Assembly: GCA_964035545.1 (NCBI GenBank)
Contig: OZ037772.1
Span: 930,001-994,000 of the forward strand
Direction: 5' to 3'
Length of the DNA stretch: 64,000 nt
Source of the DNA: Bugula neritina
Lineage: Eukaryota; Animalia; Bryozoa
The notes under the pieces were generated by a model. That model did no database searches, was not told where the DNA came from, and was given only the letters and a program-made list of their open reading frames with translations. The translations under genes were made by a program, and so were the position numbers. Numbering within the stretch: position 1 is the first letter of the stretch; each line of letters begins with the position of its first letter. Of this stretch, positions 40,590-64,000 are shown one piece after another.

Positions 40590-41810
40590 AACGTTATACA
40601 GTATATTATGCTATACAGTATATTATGCTATACAGTATAGTATGTTATACAGTATATACTATGTTATACAGTATACTATGTTATACAGTATACTATGTTA
40701 TACAGTATATTATGTTAAACAGTATATTGTGTTATACAGTATATTATGTCATACAGTATATGCTATGTTATACGGTATATTATGTTATACAGTATATTAT
40801 GTTATACAGTATACTATATTATACAGTATACTATGTTATACAGTATATTATGTTATACAGCATACTATGTTATACAGTATATTATGTTATACAGTATATT
40901 GTGTTATACAGTATATTATGTTATACAGCATATTATGTTATACAGTATACTATGTTATACAGTATATTATGTTATACAGTATATTGTGTTATACAGTATA
41001 TTGTGTTATACAGTATATTATGTTATACAGTATATTATGTTATACAGTATATTATGTCATACAGTATATTATGTTATGCAGTATATTATGTTATACAGTA
41101 TACTATGTTATACAGTATACTATGTTATACAGTATACTATGTTATACAGTATATTATGTTATGCAGTATATTATGTTATACAGTATATTATGTTATACAG
41201 TATACTATGTTATACAGTATATTATGTCATACAGTATATTATGTTATACAGTATATTATGTTATACAGTATACTATGTTATACAGTATACTATGTTATAC
41301 AGTATACTATGTTATACAGTATATTATGTCATACAGTATATTATGTTATACAGTATATTATGTTATACAGTATACTATGTTATACAGCATATGCTATGTT
41401 ATACAGTATATGCTATGTTATGCAGTATATTATGTTATACAGTATATTATGTTATACAGTATATTATGTTATACATTATATTATGTTATACAGTATACTA
41501 TGTTATACAGTATATGCTATGTTATACAGTATATGCTATGTTATGCAGTATATTATGTTATACAGTATATTATGTTATACAGTATATTATGTTATACAGT
41601 ATATTATGTTATACAGTATACTATGTTATACAGTATATTATGTTATACAGTATACTATGTTATACAGTATATTATGTCATACAGTATATTATGTTATAAA
41701 GTATACTATGTTATACAGTATATTATGTTATACAGTATACTATGTTATACAGTATATGCTATGTTATACAGTATACTATGTTTTACAGTATATTTTGTCA
41801 TACAGTATAC
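40590..41810. repeat. 17-bp minisatellite (TACAGTATATTATGTTA)n
   Basis: About 70 units, with occasional 18-bp variants. Confidence 0.95.
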
Positions 41811-42546: not shown

Positions 42547-44018
42547 ATACAATACTAGGTTTATATGACTGTAGTATATTGCTGAGTGCACATGGGCAGT
42601 GCCAATAATTATAGTTACTGTAGACTTTGCTCTTAGTGATCTGGTTGGAATAATTTACAGTCCAGTTCTTCGTGATGGAAAATTTTTATCTGCGGAGCAA
42701 CTCTAACTGAAAAACTGTTATCTAAAGTTTGTTACTTAAAGTACTATATAAATATTATTAGCAGCTTGACATTTGTTATCATTAAGGAGTGTTTAATATA
42801 AATATAATACTTGAGATAAACATTCTCATGTGATATAAATAATGTAACCTGAAGTTATATCATATGACTTGACTATCTCTACTAGAGTTAGGGTGGGTCA
42901 CCTGACAGCCCACACATATCCATACGCTACAACACATACTGTAGGAACACTGGCACAGCTGAGGCTATAGGCTGGCTAATAAGTATATGGAGTAGTTGAC
43001 CCTGCAGTTAGATACTTTGTTATAGAGACTCTAACTTTCTAGTAGTAGAAATAAAAGCAAGAGTGTCCAACCTTTTCAGAGCGAGGGCCACTGCATGAAA
43101 GCAATTAATACTTCATGACGAAGGCCATATTGGACACGTTAGCTTGCTCTGATGGCCACAGCATCAGTATTTTTAAATTTACTTTATTCCAAATTCCTAT
43201 AAATCACTACACAATAAAGTTCCAATAGTTACTGTTTTATAGCATGTGTATAAGTAAGACATTAGAAAGATAGCTTCTCACTCTAATCCATGTATACATG
43301 TGAAATATTGTTTTAGTTTTTTGCCTTTGAGGGCCACATATAAATGTAGGCTGGGGGCCACTTAAATGTAGGCTGGGAGCCACATAAATGTGGGCTGGGG
43401 GCCACATAAATGTAGGCTGGGGGCCACATAAATGTAGGCTGGGGACCACATCCGGCCTGGGCCGCCTGTTGAAAAGCCCTGCTTTAAATAGTTGATATAT
43501 TAGTATGCCAGTGACCTAAAATTTAATGGTCACTCTAGTGTTATTTTACACTTAACACAATTCAAATATTGTATATGAGAAGAATGATGGCTGATCAGAT
43601 GTATAATAACATAGTTTATCAGTTCACTTGAAGTCTTAAATTATTTTTGTTGAAAGTTAGTTGCTTGCATTTTAAAACTTGTTAATAAAACTATTATAAC
43701 TATACAATATTAGGTTTATATGTGACTGCAATGGAATATTTACAATGAAATTTACAGTCCAGTTCTTCGTGATGGAAATTTTTTATCTGCAAAAGAGCTC
43801 TAACTGAAAAACTGTTATCTAAAGTTTGTTACTTAAAGTACTATACAAATATTATTAGCAGCTTGACATTTGTTATCATTAAGGGGTGTTTAACATAAAT
43901 ATAATACTTGAGATAAACATTCTCCTGTGATATAAATAATGTAACCTGAAGTTATATCATATGACTTGACTATCTCTACTAGAGTTAGGGTGGGTCACCT
44001 GACAGCCCACACATATCT
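42547..44018 (+). repeat. Local direct duplication (42547-42920 vs 43700-44018)
   Basis: About 270 bp nearly identical (TTTACAGTCCAGTTCTTCGTGATGG...CTGACAGCCCACACATATC). Confidence 0.9.
43058..43481. mobile_element. hAT(Charlie)-like MITE with internal 23-bp repeats
   Basis: CAAGAGTGTCCAACC...TGTTGAAAAGCCCTG termini and GGGCCAC motifs; TSD not conserved. Confidence 0.7.
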
Positions 44019-45877
44019 ACACTGGTGTCAGGTGATAATGGTACAATTGGCAAAATAGGTAAAACTCAGTATATCTATTATCCTATACCACTATAGAAGT
44101 CGTAGAGAACTTCGGGTCAATCAGTGGTAATGGGATTTGTATTATATTATATAGATTTCGTCAACGACCCTCGCCTAACGAGGCGCAATTGAAATAAGTC
44201 ATTGATTGGCTGAAGGTACAACCAGTTCAACTTCATTGGTTAAGTAACGATCGTAACAACTATTACAAGTGGTGGATACAGTTAGGGTTGACATTAACAT
44301 GGCAATTTCTAGCAGTATTTTACATTCTAAATTAATTTTTTTATGCGAAAGGTTTTAGGAGCTAGGAGTTATGAGAAAAAATAATATAATGTAATAGTTT
44401 TGATTGAAAAGTTTTAACAAATGCAGGTCTAAATTTTTATTTAAATCCGCTCCTTTTAGACTTTGTTTCAAACAAAGGATATTAATTACTGTAGCTATTG
44501 GATAAGAATTTAGTCTTGTAAGTATTTTGAAAGCATAATTGTCTTCTCACTCAATTTCAGCTCATATTATAAATTTATCAATCTTCATTATAAAAACATA
44601 ATTGTCTTCTCATTAAATAATTGTCTATTACAATTTTATTGCCACCATAATATAATACCATCTTGTAAAATTTTAATATTTTTCAGCATTTTTTGCTAAG
44701 TATTATAAAATTTTATGCTGCGTTGTATAATATACATATGCATATAATGAGCTGCATGTAGTAGACGAAAAAAGATATCGCGTTTAGAAAATATGTAGAA
44801 ATTATTTGTAGAATATAAACAATGTGAAATAATTTAACAAACATATAACTTTACGAACCTCAGCATTTAAATTTAGTTTGCAGCAATAATAATTTTTTGC
44901 TTGTAAAAAGTTAAGTAGAAGAGACGAACAATTTTGTTTCTTGTTTTTAATGTTATATTTGTTAACATTGTAGATGTGCCTGTATTACACTATAAAGTTC
45001 TGATTCTTTTGGTTTAACATTGTATATAACATATTTTGCAGTATATACAAAATGAGCACATATATAAAACATATACTCATAGTAAAAGTATATAAAGTTC
45101 TAATTTTTTGCTTTGTTGATAAATATCTCCTAACTTAATGAAACACAACTTTGGTATAGTTTAAGTTACATTTTTTTTGCAAATTCATGCATACTATTTA
45201 AAATATATGCATACAACTTGGTGTTTCTGATTTGTACATGAACAATTTTATTGCTAAATGCTAAGTAATTATTTAAATTTCTCCACAACAAATTCGTCAG
45301 CATGTTTTACATACCATCTTTTAGCAAACACTTGCAACACTCCTATGCAATTACATATAACTGTAGCTATTGTAAGCTGTTCAGAAAATAACAACTATTA
45401 TGAGTGCTGCATTTTTACACACACTCACACGCACACACACATGAAGAAAAAGAAGCATATAGTTTACTGTCATGAGTTACTTGCAAAAATAAGTTGAAAT
45501 ATATGTTGAAGACTTCATACATTAATACAAATGGTATACTTGCCGACAGAGGAGCGACATAATGCAACATGCTTTTAGGAGTTGCATTACCACCATCTTT
45601 CTTAGTGTGATCAAAAATATGGCATTGAAAGAAGACAATCACTGTTTTGTGGTTTACATGTTTGTATTCCGTTTAAAACATAGTTGAAAAAAACATATAC
45701 ATATTTTCTAACTTGTGTGCGTGTGTGCGTGTGTGTGGTTTTAAATGGTGGTTTGGAAAAATTAACATTAATTTAACTCAAAGTCCAAACTCAAGCCACC
45801 AGCCCTTAAACCCCTCAACCTAAACCCGGCATTCTAAATCTCTAATCCCCCCCCAGGGGGCTTTGATTTATTTACAG

Positions 45878-46030
45878 CAGGGGTGTCCAACCTTTTCAGA
45901 CCGAGGGCCAGTCTGCAAGTTTTAGCTTGAGCTGGGGCCCACAACATTTTTTTTTGTTTTTAAAATAAATTTTCAAGATTCATTAAACATCCGCAGGCCA
46001 TATGTATTGTAATTATAAGCGAGGGCTAGG
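45878..46030. mobile_element. hAT-like MITE 5' fragment related to 43058
   Basis: CAGGGGTGTCCAACCTTTTCAGACCGAGGGCCA. Confidence 0.6.
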
Positions 46031-48254
46031 CTTTGCATGTTTATTAAAATCATAACGTATTTGAATAGATATATATTATTTATGTGTGTATGTGTGTATA
46101 ATATATGCATTTAATTAAAATAGGTAAACAAGAAACATTTCATTTTTATTACTTTAATAATCAATAATTATATATGCATTTATGTTTGTGCATAAAAAAA
46201 TTATACATATATATTCATACAAAGTATAATATATTCATGATTGTACATGCAAATTTAAACAAGATGCGCCAGTGATAAGAGTCTGTACTCATACCAGTAT
46301 AGTTATATTTTACAACCATCAGTGAAACACTTGTGAGTACACAGTGAGTACTGTTTGCCTTGAACAATTCTGTTAATATCTGGTTTCGTATTAGAACATA
46401 TATAACCCTTAGTTGCTGCACTAAGTGCTGACTAGTGAGTGAAGTGTAGTATTTATTTTGTGTATTTCATTTGACTGAAAATTGAAAGTTCAAACCTTCA
46501 AGCCATCTCTGTGCAGTGCAGCATCTAACAAGCATTCAAAGGTCAAAGGTCAAGGCGATTACAAATCCCAAATCATTTCAGTACATACTCGCACAAAATT
46601 CATTATAAAACAAAATTGTTTAGACATCTAACCTTAAAACAGTATGTAAATGAAAACTAACATACATAGTAATATTTCAGTACTGCATAAGTAAAGTGTG
46701 TCAGGGATTCTTCAACTACTTATCTTTCACAATACAGTCAATAAAAATGAGATCTCAGTTACACTTTCAAAAAAATCTTGTCTCTATATGGCCAGTCCTG
46801 ATTAAATGTCTTTGAAATACCTGTCTGCACAGGATAGTTACAGGTAACTTTTTAGCTGCAACTGCCCTGCAGAGGTTTGCATTGTAACTGTGTAAAAATT
46901 CAGTACCAGTAAAAACAATCTTATTTAATTGAAGGCTACTAGAATCAAAATTTAAAAACTATGGTGTGAATCTTATTTTTTCTCAGTGCAGCTTTTTTGG
47001 TATTTTTTCATTCTTTTGCAAAGTTATAGAAAAAACTGCACATTTTTGGCTAATTTTGCCTCAAAAATTGATTTTTGGGGTACCAGTAAAATATCTTAGC
47101 AGGAAAACATGATATCTGAATAAAAAAGCAATGACTTTTAGATTTTATATAAATTGTGGATTTATACACTAGAAATGGTATACTTCTTTTTAAGTAGTGA
47201 ACACTGTGCATCACTTCACACTTCAGTGATGAGCACATAATATAGGGGTCTACATTACTATAAGTCACAGGCTTGCTAGCTAACAGACTATCTGGCAGGA
47301 GGATACACTTGCATTTATAGATATAGTGATTGCAATTAAAGATTGAACACTTTTCCCACCATGATGAGTTATGCTATAATTACAGCTGTAAATACTTTTT
47401 CCAGACACTAATTTGATTCAAATAGCCACACACTTTAATTAGAAACAGGTGCTAATGCCGTTCTAAGTTTACTATGGAGCTTTTTAAAGATCATTTTATT
47501 TGTAGATCTTTTTAGATTGGATATAATGTGGTAAAATGCAGTAGTTTTATGGTCTTTTTATTGTTGACCTCAAATTTAGTTTGTTTGGTAGACTAAATTC
47601 TACATTTTGCATCTATATGTCTGCATGGTTATATGATTCCTTACTTTCTTCTGTCATATTATTATTATATTAGTATTGATGTAAACACTCTATGAATCAT
47701 GAAGGTCAAGAACCTTCAACATTGTGTGCATGCATTGTTATAGTTTCTTACAACTTTAGGTAAAATTGGCAGCGTCATCCCAGTTAGATGCTAATTATTA
47801 ATTAATTTCAGTGCAACATATATTTTATGCACAATTCGTTTGAATATTAATGAAATAAATCTATATTCAAATAAACTTGGATCAATTGTTTGCTATTTGA
47901 AACATAAATTTTTTTTGATCTGCATCAACTTATTAATTTTGAAATTCTCTACATCTTGTTGTTTTTTTTATAAATATTCATCAAAAATAATGTCTAATAA
48001 TAATGTAATACGGTTTTTTGCCTCACACAAATCCTTGAAAAGTAGGCTATTATTCCAAATAATTTATTAGCTAATATAGCTATAATTATAGCTATATTAT
48101 AGGCATATTAGCTATTTAGCAATCGATACGCCAGTTGATGTGCAGAGTCTAACTTTGGAAGCCTTTAGGTGAGAAGAATCCAAGTGGGAAATTTAGTCTA
48201 GCTTCAACCATAGGATAAGCCTCTTATATCTGCAATATAGGATGAAACCAAAAT

Positions 48255-48447
48255 TGCCCATGCAGGTAAAAATGGAAGAGGTAAAAATGATAAAGGTAAA
48301 AATGGCACAGCTAAACATGACACAGGCAATAATGGCACAGGTAATAATGGTTTTGTATATGTATTTTGTATTGTATATATTATATCAGTTATATACGATG
48401 CAGGTGGTTCTTATTACATGTGCCACTTTTACTGGAGCCATTTTTAC
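48255..48447. mobile_element. GGCACAGGTA-family MITE remnant
   Basis: GGTAAAAATGGCACAG repeats and inverted TGTGCCACTTTTAC. Confidence 0.55.
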
Positions 48448-49302
48448 AAATGAAAAAAAAAATGGATTGTAACCGAGAGCTTTTGTGGTGGCTCGTGGAG
48501 CTACTGTCATAACGAAGAAGGGGGAAATATTAATTCCCTTCCAAGTGCAGGACGGGGTCACTAAGTGTGTTAAGAAGATGATTCGAGACAGAAACCCGCC
48601 AATATGAATCATGAACTATAATTAGCAACAGTGACTTCCCGCGTAACAGTTATGATCAAGTAGACATGCAAACTTTAATCACTGTGCTGGGTAGTTGTTA
48701 ATGTGTTTGAATAGATGTAGTTTTTAGATTGTGTATTGTTGTATAAATATATTGTAATCTGAACTACGCTTGCGAAGTTGATTTAGAATACGCGTTGTGA
48801 AATCACTTGATCGCACACTCAAACCCACAATACTGAAAAAGATAACACTTTGACCATCATGTGCTAAAACAAATTACGTTTTTCACTTTGTTCTTTGCAC
48901 TCGAAAACAGGTCCATCACTTAATTAAATTGGATGAGTAACTTATAGGCTTGCTAATGTTTACTGATATCGTGGTTCTGTGCTAATAAGAATTGTTATAA
49001 AACCAGGTGTAGCACAAGTAGAAATGCAGTAAATAAGAAAGTAGGCACGAATGGCAGATATATATGGACACTTGATACTTTCTTCCCATTTCTTCAAATT
49101 TTGTTGAAAAGTATTTTGTTTTGCTTTCAATTTAAAGTTGGCTTTTTTTTCTTGCATCCATTATGTTTGTTTGAAACATTTTTAAAGAGTTTAATTTGAT
49201 TTTGCTGACTTTACAACTTTTCCAAAATTATTGTTATAGTTAATTTTCTAGACCTGTAACAACTTTAATTGTTATAAGTTGTAGTGTTGTGTTAACCCAG
49301 TA

Positions 49303-49373
49303 GCCTCCGTGGTGTAATGGTAGCACACTTGCTTGCAAGCCTGAGGACCCGGGTTCGATTCCCAGTAGTGGCA
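49303..49373 (+). pseudogene. tRNA pseudogene or tRNA-derived SINE head
   Basis: A-box GTGGTGTAATGG and B-box GGTTCGATTCCC; acceptor and anticodon stems mispaired; isotype unclear. Confidence 0.7.
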
Positions 49374-50090
49374 AATATTTCACATAAGTCTTGTTATTAT
49401 ATACCCGCAAACAATTTATTCTCTTTTTGTTTGTTATAGCTAATAGAAAGCTAAACCACTGCTGTATGCTTGAACCAATGAGATGGCTCAATGTTGCGTT
49501 AGGCTAAATTTGCCAGATCAGCAGCAACGGAATAGCTTATACGTAATTGATTAGAAACACTTGAAGCATTCAATACTGAGGTACTAAGAATTTATCAGGA
49601 AATTATTTAATTTTTTGAAGTATATTCTTTATTTTAAATATTTTGAATCAATCATAACTAGTCACGATATTTAAATAATTTATCATCAATTTATTATGTT
49701 TTTGTTTACCATATTACTATTAGTTATTAGTATGACCGCGCGTGAGGTTTTATAGAAATTAAAAATAACTCTTTATTTTGATACATCATGCATGGTTACA
49801 TTATGTAATAATATATTACTGTTGTATGTTTTTGTATGATTTTGCACATAATTACCAGTTTTAAAGCATCATGGTTCTTTTTATCTATTCATAATCAGTA
49901 TGATTATTCTTATATTATATAAGTATTATTTAGTTTTTCTATTCCAAATTATGCCAGTCTGTATTCCTGCAACCTTTATATAACGCTATGTTCATTGCAA
50001 ATTTATATTGTTTTAGATTTCACAGTAAAACGCATGGATAGCTCAACAAAAATTAAAATTGCACATTGCAATTTGTGTGCAGAAGCTTTT

Positions 50091-53000
50091 ATGCAACCAC
50101 CCAGCGTTAGGCCTCCTGCAAAATGCAGCAAATGCAGTAAGTATAATAAAATAAAGGATATTTTATAACTTGATTATTATATATTATGATTGATTAATTT
50201 AAATTAATTTATGCTAGACAAGCCAAGTATATATGTATGCTGCTTATATCATAATAATTATTTTCAAGTGTAGTAAATTCTTTTTGAGCTTCAATCAACA
50301 AATACCTACTATTTACAGTTTGCAGTAAAAATGACACAGGTAAAAATGGCACAGGTAATGATAATACTGATAATAAAGGCACAAATGGCAAAGTAGGTAC
50401 AAATAATGGCACATTTTCAATGTTATGGTTTGGGGTGGGATGGGGTTTAGGTTTGGAAATGAAGGTTTGAGTTTGGGGTTTAACAAGTTTGACATCAGTG
50501 TGCATTCTTTCTCACTTTTCTATTTGTGCCCTTAAATTACCATAGTGCCATTATTATACTTGTGCCATGTTATACCAGACGCGCAGGCAAACTGCAAGTG
50601 CAAGCGAATCGGCTCGTACTTATATAAGTAATTTGAGTTCTCATAATTTAATTAGGTAATCAATGCTATTTTATCCAGCATACTTTAAAACTTGGCTATA
50701 TAGCTTTTATTTTTGTAGCTAATTTTTTCATTTATTTTTCCAATTTATTTAAAGTAGCAAAAAATTCTCAATAAAACATAATTTAAGCTAAGACAATATT
50801 TTATATACAAAAAACATATATATAGTAGACCAAGTATCATCTATTGAAATAGTTGTATAGTTGCATGATTACAACAACATGCATATGGAATATAATATAA
50901 TAGTTATGGGCTGAGGCTTTTTCTTTGTTTGCATATAGTTTTCCAGATCATAGGTCTTGAGTTGTTTGTGGTCAATTATATATACTATTCTGTAAGTAAA
51001 CAGGATTGCTATACATAATTAGTTTAGCAATCTTTCGTTTTATGTGAGCACAGGCATCATAATCTAGATTGTATAGAATGTCTACAATTTGTTATGCTAA
51101 AACAAATTACTTTAGCATTAACCACAAAACCAGTACAGTTTCTTGTTTTACGTGTCATATGAGTTTAATTTCATCTATGGCTCTAAATTTAAAAATAATT
51201 ATGAGATAGTAGATTTACTTATATAAAATAGTTGGGCATTCTTATATAAATCCTCAAGAATGAAATATAATTCATATACACTTCCTTGCTGTTTCTTGTT
51301 AATTGCAATAGAAATTAAAAACATAATTTTGAAATAGCCTAAGTATTTTTGTGCTCTCAAATCCTCACTGACAATTATGGTATAGCACTTTAACTTTTCA
51401 ATGTGCTATATAATGAAAAGAAATGCTATAATAGCTATTATGCAAGCGTTTATTATAGATAAATGATCTCTTTAAATAAACGATGTTTCTTGCATGCAAT
51501 TAAACTTTTTTGCAATATTATACTTAAAATTATAACTCTAGCTATTAATAGACATGAAATTTTCAAGTAAAACCATCTTATATCATAATCCTATAGTCAT
51601 TTATAGGTCTTTAAAAAGGATTTAGTATAATTTATCATCTGGTAAGTTATTATATATAGTTAGCACCAATTTCACCAGAAATTTCATGAGGCCATACTGC
51701 AGTTAAAACTTGTTTATTGTTATCTTGGTTTTTTAGTTACCAAAAGGGAATGCCCCAGCTGCAAACACGTTATACCAATAAATGCAGTCAATTGCTCCAA
51801 CTGTGGTGAGTACATTATTACTTATGGTAATAGAGCTTCCAATTGTTCTACTTTGCTTTCATTGGTGTCACACACACACACGCACTCACTCACTCACTCA
51901 CACACTCACTCACACACGAAATATTTTACTATAAAAGTTGTGACTTCAAAGATTTTACTGCAGCGTTCACAGGTCAAATGAAAAGTATATGCATTTAGAT
52001 AAGTCATTTTGTCTGGTATACAATTATACCCAGGTTCTTTTTACATATGAAGCTATATCTGCATACATGTCTTAAAAAGTTTAATTTAAAGCATCTTAAG
52101 TAATGTATAATTGGATATATATGTGTATATATTTAGGGAGCTCTATGAGATCATTAACACTACAAACTAAACAGGAGACATTGGCTAGACAGTTTGAGTA
52201 TGGTGCTCAACATAAAAAAGGTAACGGCTACACAAGGCAGAGGATGTGTAACATGGTAAGCGATTTTGTTCTCTAGAATGCTATAATAATAGCAAATTAT
52301 AGGAAAATGAAAACAAAGTTGATCTGCATACATGTGTGACGCCATCAAATAAAATCTTTTAACTTCTGCAATATTGTAATGCTTAAATATAATATCAGTT
52401 TAAGCAAAAAATGAGAAAGGTATTTTACTATGCATGCATAACTAAAACGCTGTGCCAGTAGCTTATTTACCATTTTTGGTAAAAATTGCTTTCTGTAAAC
52501 AATAATTTGATGCGGTATAAGTTATTTTACTTATAATAATAACAAATAGAATTAATTACTAAGTGCATAGCTGTTCTTTTGTCCATATTATTGTTGAAAT
52601 AATTTAAACTATTTTATATTTTAGTCATCATTCGCTCTTGGAGCTGGCTTTGGTACAGTTACTTTTATGATAAAGCCTAACTCAAATAAGAAGGTCACAG
52701 TGATAAGCAGTGGAGTGTCATCTGAATTCTTAGGACAACTTACTAAAGCTATGACAGCAGTGCTTTTAAGTTCAAGTAAGATGCATAAATGCTTTTAGAG
52801 CTAGATGTAATATAGAGCACTTTGTATGTTTATTTATTATTTATTGACGGTGGCAACTCAAGCTTTCTACTCGTATTTTTCACTAAACCTATGGCCAATA
52901 AATACATTTTACATAAGATATTTACATTTCTTTATGTAGTTTCAGATATAAAACATGCAAATATTTGATTATCATATATAGACCATAAAAGTTGTAAAAC

Positions 53001-54939
53001 TACTTTTCTATTACTTTTTAAAAAAAATTTGTGCAGAGTTTGAATGTAATTTTACTTTATTGTATTTAGTAAAGGAAGTTTACGATCCAAACAAGATGAC
53101 AGTCATGGAAAGCTATAATAAACTAGACAAAGATGATAAACCAGTTACCATAGTTCCCTCAACCAGTGTTTCCTCAGACAGGGTTCCCTCAACCAGTGCT
53201 CCCTCAACCAGTGCTCCCTCAACCAGTGCTCCCTCAACCAGTGTGCCCTCAACCATAGGTCTCTCAACCAGTGTGCCCTCAACCATAGGTCTCTCAACCA
53301 GTGTGCCCTCAACCATAGGTCTCTCAACCAGTGTGCCCTCAACCATAGGTCTCTCAACCAGTGTGCCCTCAACCATAGGTCTCTCAACCAGTGTGCCCTC
53401 AACCATAGGTCTCTCAACCAGTGTGCCCTCAACCATAGATCTCTCAACCAGTGTGCCCTCAACCATAGGTCTCTCAACCAGTGTGCCCTCAACCATAGGT
53501 CTCTCAACCAGTGTGCCCTCAACCATAGATCTCTCAACCAGTGTGCCCTCAACCAGCTTTGTCTCCACCAGTGTGCTTTCAACCTGTCTTCCTTCAGCCA
53601 GTGTTTCCTCGGTCAGTGATCCTTCAACCAGTGTGCCCTCAGCCACTACTAGAAAGAAGAGTTCACAAAAAACAAAACGTACGTCTTTGATAATTATCCT
53701 CAAACTTTATTTAAAATCAAAATAATTATTGTCTCACAAATTGTAACCAAATTAGACAAAGCTTATTACATACTTGCATATATTTATATTGTAGTTATAA
53801 TACTTTACAATTTGTGGTTGATGCATCAGTTTTATATTTATTGTAATATTAGCTCAATGCTATATAATACAAGGTTTTGTAAATCAAGAAAATTAAAGTT
53901 TGAAGTAATTGTTTGCACAGCTTTTTGAGTATATGCATGACACGTATAAAAGATTTCATGAATTAATTTGTCTAACAAAATGTTCAGAAACTCTTTGCAA
54001 ACGTCACATATTTATAAATCGCATTATTTACCCATGTTTAAAAAGCTGTTATAAAATCATCATATAAATATAATGTTTTATGTGTTTCTTGTTGAAGGAG
54101 GTACCAAAAAACTTTGGGTGATTGAAAAGATTACTAACGTTAAAGGAAGGGAAGCACTTGTTAAATGGAAGGGGTACAGGTAAGTTGAATTGAGACCAGC
54201 AAGAATGATCATGGAGTATGAATAATTCTGCATTGAACTTTCATAATGATCCACTAGCAAAGTATAACACATGCATGCATACACAGACGATAGAGCTCGG
54301 TATAAAAATGTAAAATAGCTTACCCAATTTATTTGAGTATGCCATTTGTTATCGTAAGATTGAAAATTAGTGGTTAAATTCATTTGACTAGAAGACTGTT
54401 TATTTGGAAGCATTGTGTAATTAGGTCATGTTTTTTTATAAACTGCATTTTTTTTTACTTTTTGCTAGAAATTAGAACTTGCATGTAAGCAATGTCATAA
54501 CATAAAATGTTAGACAAAAATTTAAATTACAGAGGGAGGTACAATGGAATGTCTTTGTAACTTGTCACAGATCTAGACCGATTTTTTTTTTCTTTAACTT
54601 CAGAAGTTTGGTGGGTGCTTTTGGTCTTCCAGTTTGAAAAAGTTGTTGTTTATATTCTAGGACTCCAACCTGGGAGCCAATTACAAATGTGCGTCACACA
54701 GTGTTTTACAAACAGTTTATGGTAAGTGTACTACTTCAGCTGTTCACATTATCAATTAGTTGACTAGACACTTTTAAAATTAAAGTAGCATTTAGTTATA
54801 CTATGCTGCAGCTTAACTAAGTAAACCGGTAACTGTTCATTTGTGATTTAAAGATATCAACTGGTTGAAGTTGCATATTCCTTGTTGATTATTATTATTT
54901 CTTGTATTTTAGGGACAAGGATGCAGCAAAAGAACCTGA
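50091..54939 (+). CDS. 387-aa zinc-ribbon / Ser-Thr-rich repeat / C-terminal chromodomain protein
   Basis: Exons 50091-50136, 51737-51805, 52137-52255, 52625-52775, 53070-53678, 54098-54179, 54661-54721 and 54913-54939. All introns are GT-AG and phase-compatible; 1164 nt with no internal stop. Motifs: KRECPSCKHVIPINAVNCSNCG and LWVIEKITNVKGREALVKWKGYRTPTWEPITNV. Confidence 0.75.
50325..50583. mobile_element. GGCACAGGTA-family MITE in intron 1 of the chromodomain gene
   Basis: Same subterminal motifs; ends TGTGCCATGTTATACCAGACGC. Confidence 0.6.
53150..53645 (+). repeat. Coding 15/30-bp tandem repeat (PSTSA / PSTIGLSTSV)n
   Basis: Inside exon 53070-53678; frame preserved. Confidence 0.9.
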
Positions 54940-55601
54940 ACCTAAATATTTCATATTATATATATATATTGTAAATAAACAAATAATTGTATGCCAAACA
55001 GTTTGATATTCTTTCAAGACAAAGGTGAAAGTTACCTTGCAAATCAATTCTAGCCAACATAGGATGTGTTAAACATTACTTCAAATGTTGAATTAGAGCA
55101 TATTATGGTTACAAAAATATTATAAGAGTAAAAAGTTCTTTTTTAGATTACAAAATTATTACAGGGCAGAACAAATTAGAAAACTGTATGCAATTTCTCA
55201 TCTTTGGAATCGCTAATAACATTTAATACATGTTTGATAACAGATTATGTGTATTCTGCCAGTCACACACACACACATTAGTAAAAACTAGCTTTACAAC
55301 TTTCAAAACTATTTTAATATAAAAACAACTACTAAAATGCAGCAATAAGTATTGTGGAAAAAGGATAATTGGTTACTCATAAGCAAGTTTCATTAGCAAC
55401 GACAGTACATCATGTGACTAAAAACAACCTGGAAGAAACTCGAACATATACAGTGTGCAAGCAAGCACAATCATAGGTATTTTTAAGCTAGACATAAAAT
55501 TATTATTGAAGAGAGCTAGTTAAAATATATCCTCACTCAGATAGATAGTGGCTTGAAAAATATATCCAAAAACTATCAAAAAAGGTTTCAAGAAAAAAGC
55601 T

Positions 55602-55911
55602 TTAGTCTTCGTCAGATGAGTCAGAATAAATCGGCTGCAAGTCATCATCATCTATAATTTCTTCACACTGGAAAACAAAATGAAGTATTTTTTAATCACC
55701 CCACGTTAGCCACTATACAAGTTTTGAAATAGATTATGGTACCAAAAATATTATAGTTATATTTCTACTGAAGATTAAAAAACACACACAACAGTTTCAA
55801 ATAGTGCAATGTGTTATTAGTTTATCTTTTAAAGGATCCCTGGAATGCGGTACTTATGCACTATTAAATATATATATGTATAAACATATACATATATATA
55901 CATATATATAC

Positions 55912-55989
<78 letters not shown>

Positions 55990-58900
55990 ATCAATTCAGC
56001 ACATATACACATAAAATTTGTTGTAAAACAAAATTTAAATATTCTTATATATTATATTAACTTTCATTTACATTTAGTCAGAGATCCTTCAACATACACA
56101 AATATAAAAAAAACTTTACAATCTAAGCTAAAGATTTGCCAACATTTAGATACAACCTCTTGATCAGCACCAGAGAAGTTGGCATAACAAGACTTGAGAA
56201 AGGCTTGTTTAAATTGGGTGGAGATGGTGTCATCATTATGGTTACCATCACTTAAGGATGCTGCCATGCGTGCTACAAGAAATATATGGTGGCAACATTG
56301 ACAGAAAACTGACATAGTGATGACATAAAAAGACAGTTTTGCCACAAGAATAGATAGAATAGTAAATTGAGTTACACATGAAATTACAGACTGCAAAAAA
56401 TTAAAACAACTGATTTTGGAAAATAGAAATATACAACTACTATACCTGCATATTCAAGCAATTTTACGCGCTCTTCACCTAATATATCCAATTCTTCCAC
56501 TGTTCTATTGTAGAGATGGTATGCATCGAACAGCTTCAGTAAATTGGGGGATACAGAGAGCTTGATTTCCGAGCCTGTCCATGGAAAGATCATGGAGGTG
56601 GCTTGGTCAAAGTCTGTACGAGACAGGTACGGGTGATTTTGCACATACTCATCAACAGCCTTTTGAAGCTTCAAATATGTCGCACGTCGTTTGCTCCGCA
56701 ACCTGTCACGCCCCTTTGATGAGTCTAAATTATGAAACATATGAATGATAGTTGCCACTAAACATTTAAAGTTTTGAGCAACCGCAAAAAAAGCAAATTT
56801 GACTAAAAATAGGTACAGTAATGTGACGGACAACATTTCTCGCTACAGAAAATAGGATGGGTCTCAGATGAAAACTTCCCAGTTAGATGCTATTTTTTAT
56901 TTTGGTAAAAAAAATAAAATGAGATATATACACATGTTGCCTCCATAACAAATTATCACAACACCGAACTAAAAATTAGAAAAGTTACAAGTTTGCCAAC
57001 CTGCTAACTTGAGAATGTTTGCATCAAACCGCTGTATAGTGCAAGCTAAATCTTCCAATTTTCTTTGATCTGCAGTCAAATCTAATAATAGAAATATACA
57101 GTTTAGCGTTTATTCTGCTATGTATTGAACTAGCCTTATCATTACACCACATAGACATCTTATGACATACCACGTTTTACATACTGGGTTAACTCTTATT
57201 CTGATGTCTATTTGCCTAAACTCATTATATACAGTTTTTTGCCATACTAATATTCTGTAATTTTTCATCTACATTTATTTTTAATGTCAGTTACCTGTTA
57301 GCTCCAATACGTTACAGTCATACATTCTACAATCTTAATTATATGTATATTTAATCTTACTTGTCTAACAATATGGCAGGAGCACAACACATTCCACAAC
57401 ACAACACATTTAATTTAAAATTTGATCTCAAATTCCAAACAATTGATTTTTCGAAAAAATTGTGGATTACAAAACCGCAATCAATCTCTGGAAAAAATTT
57501 AAGTTTTCAGGCTGTATCTTAAGCAGAGGTATTCTTGAAATATAACTGAATTTGATAAAGCAAACATTTATGAAGCTAAACAAATTAGGTCTGCTTAAAC
57601 ATCCCTATAGTAGCTATTATAAATATAAACAAAGAAGATTTGTTGATTTTCATAACGTATGATGGAGAAAATCTGATCCACTTGATAGAACAGTATAGAT
57701 AAACATATATTCTATTAGATACGCAATCTAAAGGGTTTTAATCTGTCAAATTTGTGTGCAAATTAGATTACCTAACAATTTGCTGACTAACAACTAACCA
57801 ACTCTATAAGAAAGCTTTACCTGGCGAGGAGGAGCAAATCCTCTCCATCACCTCTTCTATGCTGCTGGCCTCTGGAATTTCAGATTTCTTCAGCTCTACC
57901 ATAGTGGCATGCCGTTTCGGCAGTTCCATTTCAATCTAATAATAATTAGTCATTTAAGAAACATAAATATCATCACATTTAAATATTCAACTCGATAATT
58001 CAATTTGTTTCAATAACTACTACTAAGCATGCATTATGCCAATGTACTTTTCTTCAATGTTAATGCATAGAACGAAACCATAATAATAAGTTAATGCATA
58101 CATTCTGCAGGCTTTAGCTACTTATGGATTTTCAGACGGTTTTTCATGATCATCCGAAAATCCAAATTAGGTAAAAAAACATTATCCACGAAAATTGAAA
58201 AGGATTAAAAAGAAACTTGATTATTTATTGACAATTTTTTAGTTTTGGTCAAAATCAACAGCTGCAGTCTGAAAAATAGCTAAAAAATGAAGAATACTAA
58301 ATAAATTACCATAATCGATTTAGCAACCACTGCAGTAAAATAAAAATAATATAATGCAACTAAATGGAAGAATGATGCTAAGCTATTATTTACTCCAATA
58401 TTACAATGAAATTCCGAATGAAAAACCCTTTAAATATATAAATAAGACACTTTTAAATGTTTGATTGCATAAATAATAATATATACAAGCTATAATACTT
58501 CAGAAATGTTAGTTTTAGATGTTGACTAAACTTAATTGAACACAAGGTTTTTTTTAATAAAATAAGTTTTCCATAACTGTATACAACACCTGCTTTATCT
58601 TTTTTGCCAACATTTCCGGCATCTTCTTTATTTTTCTGAAATTCCAGAAGCCAGCAGCATGCTCGAGCTGCTGACGACGACCTAGAAAAACCAATACAAT
58701 ACTTTAAAGCATTAAAAAGGCATAATGGTACTTGTACACCTTAAACAATGCATTTTGAAACAGTTTCAATAGGTTATATATCAAATGAACTTAATATACA
58801 TTCAAACAGCACGTAGTTAACAAGTATATGTTTCAAAGAGAATATAAATTGGGTACCATTAGCAGTCATATGTCTCGTTATCAAACCACACCGAGACATG

Positions 58901-61900
58901 TAGCTGTTTGTTTGCTCCGTGGTCTCGCCAGTGCTCAGTCCTACTCCCTTTTTCACCCTGCCACTCCACCTAGTCTTTAAATAGAAACAACATTGCAGCT
59001 GCGGCCTGGGGATGTTTCAATTTAAGCCTAAACAACTTGAAACCAATCATGTAAAAAATAGTTAACATGAAAAGTTTGCTTCTATATTTTAAACCAAAAT
59101 TTGCATGGAGGCAGCTAAAGGCAAAATACTCATCAGATTCAAAGGCTAAAAAATTTGGCATTTACATGTAAATGCATTGCTTCTACTTATGCTACTGAAA
59201 ACTAAAAGATTTACTGAAGCATAGTACCTGACATGTCCAAGTGTGGGCTTTAGCGTGCATCACACTCAAAAAATATTTTTGAGAGGATGCACGCTGCGCG
59301 TCCATTTTGGACAGCCAGGGGTAGTACTGGCACATGACGTCAGTAGCTATGAACTTCGCGCCAGAAAACTGTTTCTAAAATTGTTCAAACATATAATTAA
59401 AAAAATGAAGCTTTGACGTGTAAAATTTTTAAATGTACTTTGATCAGAGTTAAATTTTACAAAAAGTCACAACACATTTTGAAAACACATGAATAAAGGT
59501 TAGGAGAGCACTAATTAACTCACCTGCATTATATATGGGTAAGCGAAAACTTCCCCCCTATCCATGTCCAGTGCCTTGAGCACTAGAGCATGACGGCAAG
59601 TGGCCATCATACAGCCAGTCACACTTTTTTTTGAGAAACTGCCGGAAGACGTCTTTGCTGCTTTCCACGCAGTCTCTCCACAGTGGCCATCAACTGAGTA
59701 CTTCTAAAAATCAGATAACATAATAGCTCACTTATTTACTTAGATTAAAAAGGTACAAATAAAAAAGGTAGAATAAGTGCTATGGTAAATTTCACCAAAT
59801 AGTAAAACCAGCATATTTGAAAGCGTATCCATATTAGTATACTATTTTGAAACTTTATCTGACATTTTTCGAAACACAAATCTTTTCAACTGCATTTTTC
59901 ACTTCACCGTCATCTAAGAAAAGATGCGACGGCACTGCCTCTTCAACTGTTACTCTAAAAATAAAACAATCATAATAATAATAAGTAAAGCACACAACTA
60001 CCTATTCAATATTACATGCACATAAATGAGACAGAACAAAAACTGTGCTACCCAAGAGAAACTTACCTTCCAGCTGCTTTATATTTATAAAGCTTCATGT
60101 TGCCATCAATATGAACTGCGTGTGGTGAAGCTCCGCAGCAGGGACAATTAAAGGTTTGAGCAACATGATGGAAGAAAAAAGATTCCGCCTTTTTCCATTC
60201 CAGGAAACAGCAGTTGAAGGTGTCCTGGGACATAGAGAACTTTTGCTGTAAGAATAAACAAAAATTGCTATTATAGGCTACCTACTTAATTTTCAGCCAG
60301 AAACTAAATTTGGCCAAATTGAAAATTTACTAAGTTGCAATACATTGTTAAAGCTATTCGTCAAATTCTTGACCCTTAGATAACTTAACCAGCCAATTTA
60401 AAAATAAAAAGCAAAGAAAATGATAACCATCTGTAGATAATGATATTCAATTATAACTTTAGCAACTAAATAACTAACCTAAGATTAAATGACTATTACA
60501 AAGCATTGAAAAAAGATTCACAAAATTATGTATAACAGCTGCCTTTCCCAGTTATTGATTTTATGCTGTCAACATAACTATTAAATTTTGAAAGAGCATC
60601 AAATAGCTAGTCAATTTTCACTATTAGAAGGGAGGCTTCTGCATCAATAAGATTTTCAGTAAAACTATATAAGGGTAATCAGAACAGTGATATTAACTGA
60701 AACTCAGTATTCATTTTAGCAGAGGTAAACATTCAGCATAAGTGTATAAATGAATACTAGATTTTAAAGTTGGACAAATAATAAATGAAGAAATTTGAAT
60801 AAAAGCAGCAAAAAATTAGGAATATTGACCTTGCCATCCAATGCTGATATAAATTTTAGACTAGAAAGCATGCTTTTCATGCTTAGAGAGGGGGAATGGT
60901 GCTGCAAGATGCTATTATGCAACAAGTAACTGAATTCCACAAATACTTTTCCCTCAGGAGTTAGTGGCCACAGCCCGATTTTAGGAAAATCTTCACACAG
61001 CTGAACAGGTGCCCACGAGCACAGCTCACAATAAGGTACATTTATCGCTGTTTCAGAGAGCCCTAAAACCGAAAGATTATAGTAAAATGTTGAAAGCTAA
61101 ATATAAAGAGTCTGAAAAATGAAAACATGCATGCATTTTAAAGTTTACTTTAGAATAACAGGAAGTAAAGCAAAAAATAGATGTGTGGTCAAAATGTGAA
61201 TTAGCAAAAAACCCGAAAATTCCACATCACCTAAAGTGGTGGAGAATGCAACAATGACCTGAATGAATGAAAATATTTTTAAATTAGAGTTTAGAACTTG
61301 TAAAATTTACCATCATTAGTGATGACCTTGAGGGTATAAGTAGCTCTCTCAATGATTGGCTGGTTGCAGACTTGGCAAGTTGATGGAAGCAGAGTAATCC
61401 GATCACCTAAAATTAAATCAAAAATCAGTTCTTGGCTAGAAATGCTAACCTTTTACATTCAGCAATATAGAAAATATAGTTATAACATGGCAATCATGAC
61501 GGTTAAGACTGTTAATTGAAATCGACGCTATAGAAAGCACATACTAAGAGAGAGTTTTCGAGCTTCCATGCCAGTAATTGTATTCTTATGAAGAATTGAT
61601 CGAATTTTGTCCCATTTAACTAAGCTAGCCTCTATATATGTAGGTGTTCTTTGTGGCTGGGAAGAACAGTACTGTCCAACAAGGTCCAGCAATCTTTCAA
61701 CATCTGAGAAAATTAAATAAAAACATATACTGCTCAAAAGCTAGCAAAATGAAATGTTATAATTTGTCAACAATTTTATCTATTTGGAAATTCAAATGAA
61801 AATGGTTTGTTTATACTAGCAGCACATTGAAGCTAAAATCAATAAGTTATATGTACCAAACAAGGGTTGAACTGCAAATATTATTACTTGATTCGTGTTC

Positions 61901-62909
61901 ATATAAATAGCTATATTGGCAACTACAAATTACAAATACTTTCTGTGTTGAGTTGATGGCAAAGAAACATGAAACATATTTTCAAGTTTAAAAACAAACC
62001 ACATCTAACTATTCTATTTTACCTTAAGTGTGCATACTTACACGCACTCAATTGGTTTTCATTTTCCACATCTACTGTATTGGAACTGGTAGCATTATTG
62101 TCTAATGAGTGTACTTGCTGATTCGCAAAATCTAAAATAAACGTTACAAAAAGGTGCTTCAAACATCCAGCTAATAAAGTAAACCAACTGCATGCATTCA
62201 GCAAACAAGTTTCACTGTACATAAAAGGTGAAAAATTAACCTGTTAGGTGCTTAGAGACAACCCTTGTTAGCTTATCACTGTATTCTTTTGACGTTGTGT
62301 TACCAGCTTGTGATAATTCTAATAAAAAAAAAACGCAATATCTACATATAATGTTGAATGAATCAAATACAGCAAAATTTTAAGAAACTCTTGCTGCACT
62401 TTATTTATAAAGTATTAACAGAAATAAATATACCTTAGCTTTCATTTCAGTTCAAACTTTTTCAGCTCAGTTATTACAATGTAGGCAGCTAAAATAGCTG
62501 TTTCAAAATGCCACGGACTTCAGAGCCCAATGAAAGCATAGTCAAGCAACCAGAAATTCCAAATCAATTTAGGACATATTTGTATAAAAAGATATTATAA
62601 AACACGATAATTGTTTGAACATGCAACCCACAAACAGATGGGAGCTTATATATATATATATATATATATATATAGCTGCAAGAGACTCTTTAGCATAGAC
62701 AAAGATTGATGCTAAATAAAGCTAACAAACTCATAGAATTTTATCAAATAGTGTAAGATACACCTACTTTTTTCATGGTATTTTTCTCTTCGTTCTTCAA
62801 GTTTCAATCTTTTTGCAGCATCATGTTTAACTTTATCCTCTGCGATACTTTTTTTAAGTGATGACTGGAGTAGTGATAAGGCCGTAGAATAGGTATTTTC
62901 ACTAGCCAT
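55602..62909 (-). CDS. KDZ (Kyakuja-Dileera-Zisupton) superfamily transposase with CxC-type Cys cluster; spliced, apparently intact
   Basis: Exons approx. 62909-62768, 62318-62240, 62131-62042, 61703-61544, 61407-61311, 61062-60830, 60246-60067, 59954-59864, 59703-59524, 59374-59228, 58974-58857, 58681-58590, 57936-57821, 57081-57000, 56724-56446, 56272-56157, 55667-55602. Motifs: CELC..IGLWPLTP; CPCCG..AVHIDGNMKLYKY; CGETAWKAA..GCMMATCRHA..MDRGEVFAYP; FIATDVMCQYYPWL; LSVMHAKAHTWTCQ; WSGR..GVGLSTGETTEQTNSYMSR; FPW..RTVEELDIL; acidic tail. Confidence 0.88.
55870..55978. repeat. (TA)n microsatellite in the last KDZ intron
   Basis: Direct observation. Confidence 0.95.
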
Positions 62910-64000
62910 ATTCTATAATATTTCAAACAGATATCTTTTAGTTATAGTTAGTAGTTGTGTACAGACTCATTGCGGTAAACAAGCAAAAAAACTTTGTGGT
63001 ATGGATAAGAAAGGTTTTAAAACAAAAGCCATAATTTTCAAAAAGTCTGCACCCCACTTAAAATCAACACGATCCTAGATGCTACACCAGTGCAACGAAT
63101 AATTAAAACAGTGTATCTTATAGAGTTAATAACTGATATTGCATGGTTAAAATGAACAAGAAATAAAGAGAAGAAACAAACTGGCAAAAAATGCTTTCCA
63201 GAATATTTCTTAAATATATTGACATTAGAAAAATCAAAATACAAACACGAGAGGTATTACTATGCAAAAAATTCTTCCCCATATAACAAGCAAATATTAT
63301 TAGTTATTTATCAGCTAAGCATAGACGCACAACGTTTCATAGTTGATTGTAAGAAAAAGGTCGGCAAAGGTTTTTGGATGTTGCAATAAAGATAAAACTC
63401 AAACCTTAGTGTGTTAGGGTAAATGAGCAAAAAACTCTATACCTATGTTACCAGAAGCAGCAACTGGTCCCAAAAAGTGCAGTAAAACTTTACACTTTTA
63501 ATGATGATGTTTTATGATCATTATTATTAATAAAATGTATATCATACTAATAAAACTGTAACTGTAAATGTGAAACATATAATTCATATCAATATTCACA
63601 CGTATAAGAGTATTTACTTAAAATAGCTTATTCATTTGGAATTGTAACTAATACTCACAAGTAACAGAACACGTACCAATAAAATAACAATCACTGTAAG
63701 AAAATGAGTATTTAACACCATAAAAACCTAAAGCATTGATACTTGTGGTACATCTAGTACTAAAGCACTTACAGACTTACAGTGGTAGTTTGTTATCACT
63801 AATGATTTTCACAGTTCTCAATCAAAAGTGTACTTTGCAGTTATTATAATTGACGTAACTAGTAATGAAGATTGCAATATTATTACCAATGTAAATAATG
63901 ATGGTAATGAAAATAATTAAAACCATGATGATCTTAATTATGATCTAAATCAATTCATCATTATTAAAAATGTGAGTCTTTGATGTCTTGGCTATAGTAA

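Follow-up and report, generated by a model that had tools for sequence, protein, structure and literature searches.

A giant two-gene KDZ transposon of Bugula neritina carrying a putative zinc-ribbon/chromodomain gene

Results

Two converging genes within a single transposon

The window, that is, the whole stretch of 64,000 nucleotides of Bugula neritina DNA analyzed here (contig OZ037772.1), is numbered from its first letter, and its features are collected in Table 1. The initial annotation had described two spliced genes converging at this locus, and Pfam and homolog-profile matches bear this out, with a KDZ transposase gene on the minus strand and a zinc-ribbon/chromodomain gene, hereafter called the partner, on the plus strand. 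Both are part of a single DNA transposon of 26,098 bp (44067-70164), which runs 6,164 bp beyond the end of the window. Only these two genes could be recognised in the transposon, and each is transcribed from its arm towards the interior. A search for a third gene covered the arms, the A-specific DNA and one element of subfamily B; it gave no Pfam match, and Rfam returned only the tRNA-like insert. The stop codons of the two genes had been placed about 660 bp apart. Their convergence holds, and the figure itself hangs on a presumed KDZ stop near 55602, the last profile-supported exon ending at 56447.

Table 1. Features of the transposon and of its target site, in window coordinates.
Feature	Position	Strand	Remarks
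Target-site duplication (TSD), left copy	44059-44066		GTAAAACT, 8 bp; right copy at 70165-70172, beyond the window (L021:6165-6172)
Left terminus and left arm	44067-45715	+	Common to the non-autonomous subfamilies; 92-93% identical to subfamily B
Subfamily A-specific internal DNA	45716-50033		5' of the partner gene; without recognisable gene; no similarity to subfamily B; no Pfam matches on open frames
tRNA-like insert	49303-49373		Within the A-specific DNA; Rfam tRNA 35.7 bits; ARAGORN makes no call
Partner exon 1	50034-50136	+	ATG and first zinc ribbon (CNLC...CSKC); 59% aa identity to the paralog
Partner exon 2	51737-51805	+	Second zinc ribbon (CPSC-x10-CSNC); 69 nt, phase as in the paralog
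Partner exon 3	52137-52255	+	Conserved with the paralog, including donor GTAAGC
Partner exon 4	52625-52775	+	Conserved 50-aa block, no known domain; 151 nt here and in the paralog; 62% aa identity; AG and GTAAGA conserved
Partner exon 5	53070-53678	+	Ser/Thr/Pro-rich tandem repeats (STSVPSTIGL units), then basic RKKSSQKTKR
Partner exon 6	54098-54179	+	N-terminal half of the chromodomain (LWVIEK...VKWKGY); 98-100% identical in five copies
Partner exon 7	54661-54721	+	C-terminal half of the chromodomain (TPTWEPITNV...)
Partner exon 8 and stop	54913-54939	+	Least certain exon; paralog without conserved counterpart
Gap between the converging genes	54940-55594
KDZ (Zisupton-type) transposase gene	55595-62909	-	Intron-rich; ATG at 62909; 3' end tentative
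Profile-supported KDZ gene exons	61303-61386, 60830-61030, 60066-60236, 59521-59694	-	CxC3 in 60830-61030; CPCC...DGN in 60066-60236
Profile-supported KDZ gene exons, continued	59222-59362, 58852-58974, 58587-58679, 56447-56743	-
Right arm (7.2 kb), start	62963-64000	+	In all subfamilies; continues to 70164 (L021:6164), ending ...GATGCACTG

The KDZ transposase gene

The transposase exons were delimited with a profile made from 19 animal homologs, which yielded collinear, stop-free exons from 61386 to 56447. This profile replaced an ab initio exon chain maximising KDZ coding length, which we rejected for its junk exons and for skipping the CxC3 exon. The Pfam KDZ family (PF18758) matches the exons at 58777-59703, a single exon reaching 30.5 bits where the cut-off is 26.6. 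Positions 119-205 of the same profile are covered by two further exons, and a genome-wide scan for the family agrees with these assignments. The CxC3 family (PF18804) is matched at 60767-61096 by a single exon, with a score of 24.6 bits (E 2.3e-5) for a slightly higher cut-off of 26.6, and this exon aligns with the corresponding part of a profile made from CxC3-annotated homologs. The transposase keeps 51 of the 72 strongly conserved columns (>=90%) and retains the motifs DGN, CRH, GE and HxxxHxxxC. Its closest full-length relatives are CxC3/KDZ proteins of fish, jellyfish, starfish and the sea anemone Nematostella, with 38-51% identity over the core exon, and the exons are collinear with these animal relatives. 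At the other end of the gene, the block 55595-55699 is conserved in a sister subfamily, in keeping with a 3' end of the KDZ gene at this block.

The partner gene

The partner gene is predicted to encode a protein of 406 residues in eight GT-AG exons, from the ATG at 50034 to the TGA at 54937-54939. Its start, previously set at 50091, had to be moved: the residues upstream of that position, including the first CxxC, are conserved in a paralog (see below), and the true start is the ATG at 50034. Exons 3 and 4 (52137-52255 and 52625-52775) were revealed only by their conservation with the paralog, and an earlier model of six exons (316 aa), which had missed two exons, was superseded after this comparison. 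The predicted protein has two zinc ribbons followed by a linker of Ser/Thr/Pro repeats, a basic stretch and, at the C terminus, a chromodomain-like domain. Exon 5, with the repeats and the basic stretch, measures 429 to 879 nt among the five copies of the element, in frame every time.

The zinc ribbon of exon 2 scores 25 bits with Pfam DZR and 22.9 bits with Zn_ribbon_3, each slightly below its cut-off. In the same way, the chromodomain family (PF00385) is matched with 23.0 bits (E 7.6e-5), below the cut-off of 25.1. A phmmer search retrieved 51 solved chromodomain chains at E values up to 1, the best being CDYL2 (E 4e-4), followed by HP1, Rhino and CBX. We read the W of LWVIEK and the W and Y of VKWKGY as the positions of a methyl-lysine cage; the alignment with CDYL2 begins after the first W and spans VIEK and WKGY. 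As for the 50-aa block of exon 4, it has no Pfam match, and the ESM Atlas gave only sub-threshold, unrelated matches. A word search with a 50-residue part of the partner's only long stop-free frame produced no candidates within the length window.

Boundaries and target-site duplications

An element of more than 13 kb with both genes had been proposed, for which neither terminal inverted repeats nor a TSD could be located by eye. The two genes do lie in one mobile element; its size is 26.1 kb, and its ends, at 44067 and 70164, fall outside 50091-62909, the right one being beyond the window. Both termini are sharp, with 5'-CAGTATATC on the left and GATGCACTG-3' on the right. The terminal inverted repeat is short and imperfect (CAGTATATC versus CAGTGCATC, 7/9 nt), and a search for subterminal repeats at both ends gave nothing convincing. 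Homology with the C5 copy of the element shows a sharp border at 44067, and borders and TSDs were seen in the window copy as well as in the C5 copy. Empty-site paralogs of the target repeat pass from GGTAAAACT to ATATAGCAC with a single GTAAAACT, and this single GTAAAACT across the empty sites of other target-repeat copies fixes the boundaries of the element.

Ten copies were checked for 8-bp TSDs, whose sequence differs from copy to copy. The duplication is perfect in eight of them, is conserved at 7/8 positions in a ninth and is missing in the last one, the C7 copy of subfamily A. Recombination with the neighbouring C7 element was considered for this loss and rejected, because the neighbour has its own perfect TSD.

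A contig of run X1 joins 44066 to 70173. Its reading as an allelic empty site, which would have made the insertion polymorphic, was dropped because the left flank is a repeat concentrated on C8 and the same junction occurs in other copies in the assembly; the contig is possibly paralogous. The junction still supports the boundaries and the TSD.

Copies in the genome

The first comparison showed a single other copy (C5, 97-99.6%), and such a locus could be seen as a segmental duplication or an uncollapsed haplotype in which the two genes are chance neighbours. The genome, however, contains five full copies of 26-32 kb with less than 1% variable sites, located on four contigs with flanks that are all different, as well as about 30 shorter relatives of 17-20 kb, which have the same termini but contain neither the partner nor the core of the transposase. 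In total, about 40 left ends and 36 right ends could be paired as 5, about 18 and about 10 elements. Direct duplications of 8 bp with varying sequence at nearly all copies, together with the paralogous empty sites, refute the duplication or haplotype explanation, to which we give practically no credit.

The other copies were examined by exon searches and in short sequence segments. Both genes are present in all five full copies with constant order and orientation, in line with the co-occurrence expected of a two-gene element, and partner exons and an intact KDZ core exon are found only in these five copies. The initial annotation had named two findings that would speak against such an element, namely a partner confined to loci unlinked to KDZ and KDZ copies ending in the intergenic gap. 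The partner resides in five KDZ copies, and no element end lies in the gap; the only fragment starting there is an isolated 2.3-kb piece with 92% identity and without terminus (C4:21061364-21063691).

The core KDZ exon is 100% identical across the five copies, all the exons listed in Table 1 for the transposase are intact in the C5 copy, and two copies that were compared show 22 mismatches in 7.8 kb. Recent activity follows from the identity of the core exon in the five copies, from the near-identity of the copies and from their intact TSDs. Altogether, the sequence data show that 44067-70164 is an apparently autonomous and recently active cut-and-paste KDZ element, probably of the Zisupton type. 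The shorter elements presumably depend on the five full copies for their mobilisation in trans. The insertion contexts are mixed: the window copy lies in a C8-specific repeat and the flank of the C5 copy is unique DNA.

KDZ-free paralogs of the partner

Diverged paralogs of the partner exist on C3 (at 18.36 Mb and 18.51 Mb, with a decayed one at 21.05 Mb) and on C4. The C3 paralog at 18.36 Mb is identical to the partner in exon sizes (69, 151, 82 and 61 nt), phases and intron positions, and across the 190 codons compared between the two genes dN/dS is 0.20 and dS about 1.45. No KDZ Pfam match was found anywhere on C3 or C298, and no element terminus lies near the C3 paralogs. The shared intron positions and the low dN/dS relative to these KDZ-free paralogs thus point to a long-constrained gene common to host and element, and the partner gene has very probably been under purifying selection through nearly all of its history. 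Moreover, its nearest paralog in the genome has only 52-68% amino-acid identity, so that a capture would be ancient, or else the source gene has since been lost.

Since the diverged paralogs have no KDZ gene nearby, capture of a host gene is favoured over an ancestral component of KDZ elements, and we consider such a host-to-element transfer probable. The partner would have entered the element lineage as genomic DNA of a host gene family, with its introns retained. One could also imagine the reverse direction, in which the partner is an old component of the transposon lineage, from which the KDZ-free copies on C3 and C4 would have been domesticated or left stranded. The C3 copies indeed form a small duplicated family whose homology extends over 3.75 kb of gene body only and stops sharply on the left, an arrangement unusual for ordinary host genes, and decayed copies with stops are present in the genome. 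On the other hand, neither KDZ remnant nor element terminus was detected near the C3 and C4 copies. In addition, the neighbourhoods of the Zisupton-like genes of Patiria (starfish) and Dissostichus (fish) contain no such partner, which is thus not conserved across the superfamily; the closest transposase fragments lie on contigs of 1.4-2.6 kb, with their neighbours out of reach. We therefore hold the reverse direction to be improbable.

Discussion

The best overall explanation of these data, to which we would give a probability of roughly 0.6, is a two-gene KDZ element with a captured and constrained partner, for which an accessory role in trans is the likeliest function. A different view is that the partner is a neutral passenger, picked up in the manner of Pack-MULE or CACTA transduplication and intact merely through the youth of the copies. 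Variation among the five copies would fit this view: with 4/600 variable sites in exons and 28/3680 in introns, exon variation is as high as intron variation, so that the recent burst shows no sign of selection, and 3/5 exon substitutions change the protein. The partner is intact in four of the five copies, the C5 copy having lost its start ATG. The same view would also accommodate the non-autonomous relatives that thrive without the partner, the Zisupton-like genes of other animals devoid of such a neighbour and the non-uniform insertion contexts. However, a neutral gene of 406 codons and 7 introns would, at a dS of about 1.45, have lost its reading frame, its GT-AG sites and the low dN/dS given above, and the unconstrained share of the path since divergence is estimated at no more than about 10-20%. 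The lack of any closer paralog, which makes the capture ancient or its source lost, also weighs against a passenger, and on balance we find this view rather unlikely.

Coming back to the captured and constrained partner, we tentatively propose, by analogy with other elements, that it could act as a trans accessory factor that steers integration or blunts silencing. The chromodomain would dock onto methylated histone tails, with the zinc ribbons and the conserved middle block making contact with the transposase or the element DNA. The outcome would be directed integration or weakened chromatin silencing, as envisaged for the TET/JBP cargo of fungal elements or the Myb-like protein of PIF/Harbinger. 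A more specific and rather doubtful version is that of a putative stand-alone histone-mark reader serving in trans the five full and about 30 non-autonomous copies, either as a tether for the transposase or as a shield against silencing.

Giant KDZ elements carrying genes are known in fungi and algae, where the benefit of the cargo for the element is mostly a matter of conjecture. The Bugula family is young and apparently autonomous; its ends are known exactly, it comprises five full copies and about 30 dependants, and its sole cargo is a putative histone-mark reader gene whose KDZ-free paralogs in the same genome offer a built-in comparison. It thus makes testable the question of whether a cut-and-paste transposon could use a separately encoded chromatin reader for targeting or for evading silencing. 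If the capture that we infer is correct, it would also be a clean case of a whole gene, introns included, taken up by a DNA transposon in an animal genome.

The closest parallel can be drawn with the Zisupton/KDZ elements themselves, such as Zisupton of fish and the giant KDZ elements of Ectocarpus and Chlamydomonas. Zisupton TSDs are 8 bp long (PMC12730594), giant KDZ elements with accessory genes reach 30-32 kb, and those of Ectocarpus have many non-autonomous derivatives together with decayed transposases (PMC12477816). The Bugula element resembles them in its KDZ transposase with a CxC3-like cluster, its 8-bp TSDs, its giant size and its non-autonomous derivatives. It differs by the addition of a stand-alone zinc-ribbon/chromodomain gene and by an imperfect inverted repeat of only about 9 nt. 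Kyakuja TSDs, for their part, are 7 bp long, against 8 bp in the Bugula family. In our search of the literature, no paper came up that connects KDZ, Kyakuja or Zisupton elements with a chromodomain gene.

Among solved structures, the best matches of the partner are the CDY/CDYL and HP1-family proteins, and its aromatic residues align, by our reading, with their cage positions. The match is nevertheless weak (23 bits), the partner has neither chromoshadow domain nor CoA pocket, and the double zinc ribbon at its N terminus and its repeat linker set it apart from these proteins. Chromoviruses also combine a mobile element with a chromodomain, and the integrase-fused chromodomain of LTR elements directs integration to heterochromatin, according to Gao et al. 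2008 as cited in PMC12477816. In Bugula, by contrast, the chromodomain has a gene of its own, on the strand opposite to the transposase gene, and is not fused to the transposase, and the two insertion contexts show no common theme.

In two-gene cut-and-paste elements such as PIF/Harbinger, with its Myb-like ORF, and Nuwa, a separate small protein is encoded beside the transposase (PMC12730594). The arrangement is alike: the Bugula transposase also has a second, separately encoded small protein beside it, which could in principle act in trans, including on non-autonomous copies. Their transposase superfamily is nevertheless unrelated, and the putative accessory of the Bugula element has zinc ribbons and a chromodomain rather than Myb/SANT. 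Finally, fungal KDZ elements carry TET/JBP genes, presumed to be an aid against silencing (PMC12730594), and like the Bugula element they co-mobilise a second gene related to chromatin or epigenetics. The Bugula cargo differs in being a putative histone-mark reader and not an enzyme modifying DNA bases, and in its animal host. If the role that we doubtfully attribute to it were true, this gene would be for an animal, as a reader, what the TET/JBP genes are for fungal KDZ elements.

A single mobile element carries both genes

The window (C8:930001-994000 of the 216-Mb assembly) consists of AT-rich eukaryotic DNA (GC ~32%). The two converging genes of the initial annotation are real: stop-free pieces on the minus strand match the Pfam KDZ profile and a CxC3 cysteine cluster, and the plus-strand gene, hereafter the partner, encodes a zinc ribbon and a chromodomain-like sequence spelled jointly by two pieces. 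A search of the animal's own genome retrieved a second copy on contig C5 (97-99.6% identity), and alignment of the C8 and C5 loci showed that homology breaks sharply at window 44067 and 70164, the latter 6,164 bp beyond the window. Both genes do belong to one mobile unit, as had been proposed, but it measures 26,098 bp and not about 13 kb. An 8-bp direct duplication flanks both copies, GTAAAACT in ours and CTCCAGTC in that on C5, so that aligning copies did define the ends and target site duplications (TSDs) that could not be located by eye. The element starts with CAGTATATC and ends with GATGCACTG, an imperfect 9-nt inverted repeat (7/9 positions match). Among 10 copies checked, eight have perfect TSDs, one a 7/8 match and one, the full-length copy on contig C7 (excerpts L028 and L029), none (GAAGTGCT versus GCCGTGTA). 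To the right of the latter lies gccgtgtaacgtatgcag, similar to the terminal GCCGTGTGATGCACTG of the element itself, and this copy may abut an older, decayed terminus.

Our copy lies in a repeat family (90-98% identity; window 42867-44066 and ~7190-7540 of L021, the excerpt starting just past the window end). Nearly all of its scored copies, at least 40, are on C8 at 0.13-4.7 Mb, and the family looks chromosome-specific; the second C8 transposon copy falls within the same zone. Four other copies of the repeat hold a single GTAAAACT at the uninterrupted insertion point, and these paralogous empty sites confirm the element boundaries and the duplication. One contig of public run X1 joins 44066 directly to 70173. 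It does not prove that an allele without the insertion exists, because repeat paralogs carry the same junction, and we claim no polymorphism. A minisatellite 2.3 kb from the insertion (71 copies of the 17-nt unit GTTATACAGTATATTAT) includes CAGTATAT, identical to the 8 nt with which the transposon begins at its 5' end; this may be a coincidence.

Features of the element, its copies and its subfamilies (positions without a contig are window positions)
Feature	Location	Strand	Remarks
Minisatellite	40593-41809		
tRNA-like sequence	49303-49373	+	
Partner exon 1	50034-50136	+	
Partner exon 2	51737-51805	+	
Partner exon 3	52137-52255	+	
Partner exon 4	52625-52775	+	
Partner exon 5	53070-53678	+	
Partner exon 6	54098-54179	+	
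Partner exon 7	54661-54721	+	
Partner exon 8	54913-54939	+	
Zinc ribbon	within 51664-51978	+	
Chromodomain-like pieces	54055-54180, 54638-54760	+	
KDZ match	58777-59703	-	
CxC3 match	60767-61096	-	
A copy 1 (ours)	C8:974067-1000164		
A copy 2	C8:3598894-3625026		
A copy 3	C7:12121255-12147360		
A copy 4	C2:21304383-21332982		
A copy 5	C5:3307951-3340418		
Subfamily A			5 copies, 26.1-32.5 kb; identity to our ends 99-100%, both sides
Subfamily B			~18 copies, 17-20 kb; left 93-96%, right 97-98%
Subfamily C			~10 copies, 17-20 kb; left 77-79%, right 98-100%

Related subfamilies in the genome

Searching the genome with both terminal 600 bp of the element gave ~40 left and 36 right ends, which paired into three groups; A comprises the full two-gene copies. 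The anticipated co-occurrence at multiple loci was found, the partner accompanying an intact KDZ core exon in all five A copies. When A (window 44067-45715 and 62963-64000) is compared with B (C112:601154-618179; L025, L007, L032), the left 1.65 kb is common at 92-93% and the right 7.2 kb at 94-95%, with transposase regions just ~67% alike. In C, the right end is identical to that of A and the left end only 77-79% so. The subfamilies are mosaics, which suggests exchange between elements. A lone 2.3-kb fragment at C4:21061364-21063691 (L024), 92% identical to window 55100-57391, spans the intergenic gap and the 3' portion of the transposase gene; the rest of the element is absent nearby, and 43 bp of right-terminus sequence recur at a distance of 13 kb (C4:21047968-21048010).

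The transposase gene

A single KDZ exon scores 30.5 bits (cut-off 26.6). Against 1.84 billion representative proteins, the 62-aa core exon gave 144 matches, the nearest of which (58-67% identity) are exon-sized fragments from short contigs. The nearest full-length relatives are CxC3/KDZ proteins of the fish Dissostichus, Merluccius, Coilia and Astyanax, the jellyfish Sanderia, the starfish Patiria and Nematostella; Zisupton was originally described from this branch of animals. A profile made from 19 animal homologs matches eight collinear stop-free exons, from 61386 to 56447, and 51 of the 72 strongly conserved columns (>=90%) are kept, including DGN, CRH, GE and HxxxHxxxC; the remainder are mostly conservative changes or lie in exons absent from the model. 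Across the five A copies the core exon is 100% identical, with no intact one elsewhere in the genome. Every profile-supported KDZ exon is intact in the C5 copy (22 mismatches to ours over 7.8 kb). The B core is a decayed remnant (~67% nucleotide identity) and, since neither B nor C has an intact core, A is the sole candidate transposase source for the family. The loci C4:11721561, C4:11728328, C5:10985459 and C8:6196648 belong to another KDZ family, unrelated to this one, whose open frame of ~451 aa lacks introns; it has no link to any partner-like gene.

The partner gene and its origin

The partner was modelled by reading splice sites and then by comparison with a diverged paralog, which exposed two further exons whose splice acceptors and donors are conserved. 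The final prediction has eight GT-AG exons encoding 406 aa: from the N-terminus, a pair of zinc ribbons (CxxC...CxxC), a conserved block without assigned fold, a repeat region of ~200 aa (STSVP/STIGL), a basic patch and a putative C-terminal chromodomain. The latter scores 23.0 bits (E 7.6e-5), slightly below the Pfam cut-off of 25.1; phmmer against solved structures retrieved 51 chromodomain chains, with CDYL2 best (4e-4) and HP1, Rhino and CBX proteins next. By our reading, a W, a W and a Y would occupy the aromatic-cage positions. The gene is intact in four of five A copies; in the C5 copy, a 28-bp deletion has removed the ATG and the last intron contains a 4.8-kb insertion. Among the copies the repeat exon measures 429-879 nt, in frame throughout, as expected from 15-nt repeat units. 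The element yielded no third gene. A tRNA-like sequence ~660 bp upstream of the partner ATG (35.7 bits to Rfam tRNA; not called by ARAGORN) is probably the head of a nested tRNA-derived SINE; at roughly the same position, near 49258, the C5 copy has a further insertion of 1.16 kb.

Exon searches of the genome placed the partner only in the five A copies, in diverged copies on C3 (18.36 and 18.51 Mb) and C298 (near-identical to C3:18.51 Mb, flanking DNA included), and in decayed copies at C3:21.05 Mb and C4:20.73 Mb. The partner is hence not restricted to loci unlinked to KDZ. Terminus and KDZ scans of the genome placed no paralog within B or C elements or near a KDZ Pfam match. The C3:18.36 Mb paralog, which has a Thr/Pro-rich linker, shares exon sizes (69, 151, 82 and 61 nt) and phases with the partner; the relationship therefore runs through genomic DNA and not through a retrocopy. 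The KDZ-free paralogs (L039, C3:18355001-18365000; L047-L050) have in common only a 3.75-kb gene-body unit, with a sharp left border 85 bp upstream of the ATG and a right border inside a (ATATACTATATTGGATATTGT)n minisatellite. No partner homolog lies within 10 kb of the Zisupton-like genes of Patiria and Dissostichus. We propose that the partner was most likely captured from a host family in this lineage; transfer in the reverse direction, from element to host paralogs, would be less likely.

Over 190 alignable codons, partner and paralog differ with a dN/dS of 0.20 and a dS of ~1.45. We estimate that at most 10-20% of the divergence path could have been unconstrained, and even this would be expected to break a 406-codon gene with seven introns. 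High synonymous divergence, low dN/dS and an intact gene together argue that selection has acted on the partner through almost its entire history, irrespective of where it was located. The recent A burst is uninformative on selection (4/600 variable exon sites versus 28/3,680 intron sites). With so few variable exon sites, the Val25 codon (window 50106-50108) is a striking concentration, having three states (Val, Leu, Ile) across the five copies.

Possible function and comparison with known KDZ elements

The best-supported reading, tentative at about 35-40%, is that the partner would serve the element as an accessory chromatin-docking factor. Slightly less likely, it is a passenger that contributes nothing to the element. 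Elements of B and C spread although they do not encode it; if it matters, it would act in trans. The two insertion contexts examined differ, our copy lying in a C8-specific repeat and the flank of the C5 copy being unique.

TSDs of 8 bp, as in this family, are reported as a hallmark of Zisupton, whereas those of Kyakuja are 7 bp (PMC12730594). Ectocarpus and Chlamydomonas are known to contain giant KDZ elements, up to 30-32 kb long, that include nested insertions, accessory genes and pseudogenised transposases (PMC12477816), and fungal KDZ elements bear TET/JBP genes with a presumed role against silencing (PMC12730594). Full-text searches of the literature returned no paper that connects a chromodomain gene with KDZ, Kyakuja or Zisupton elements.
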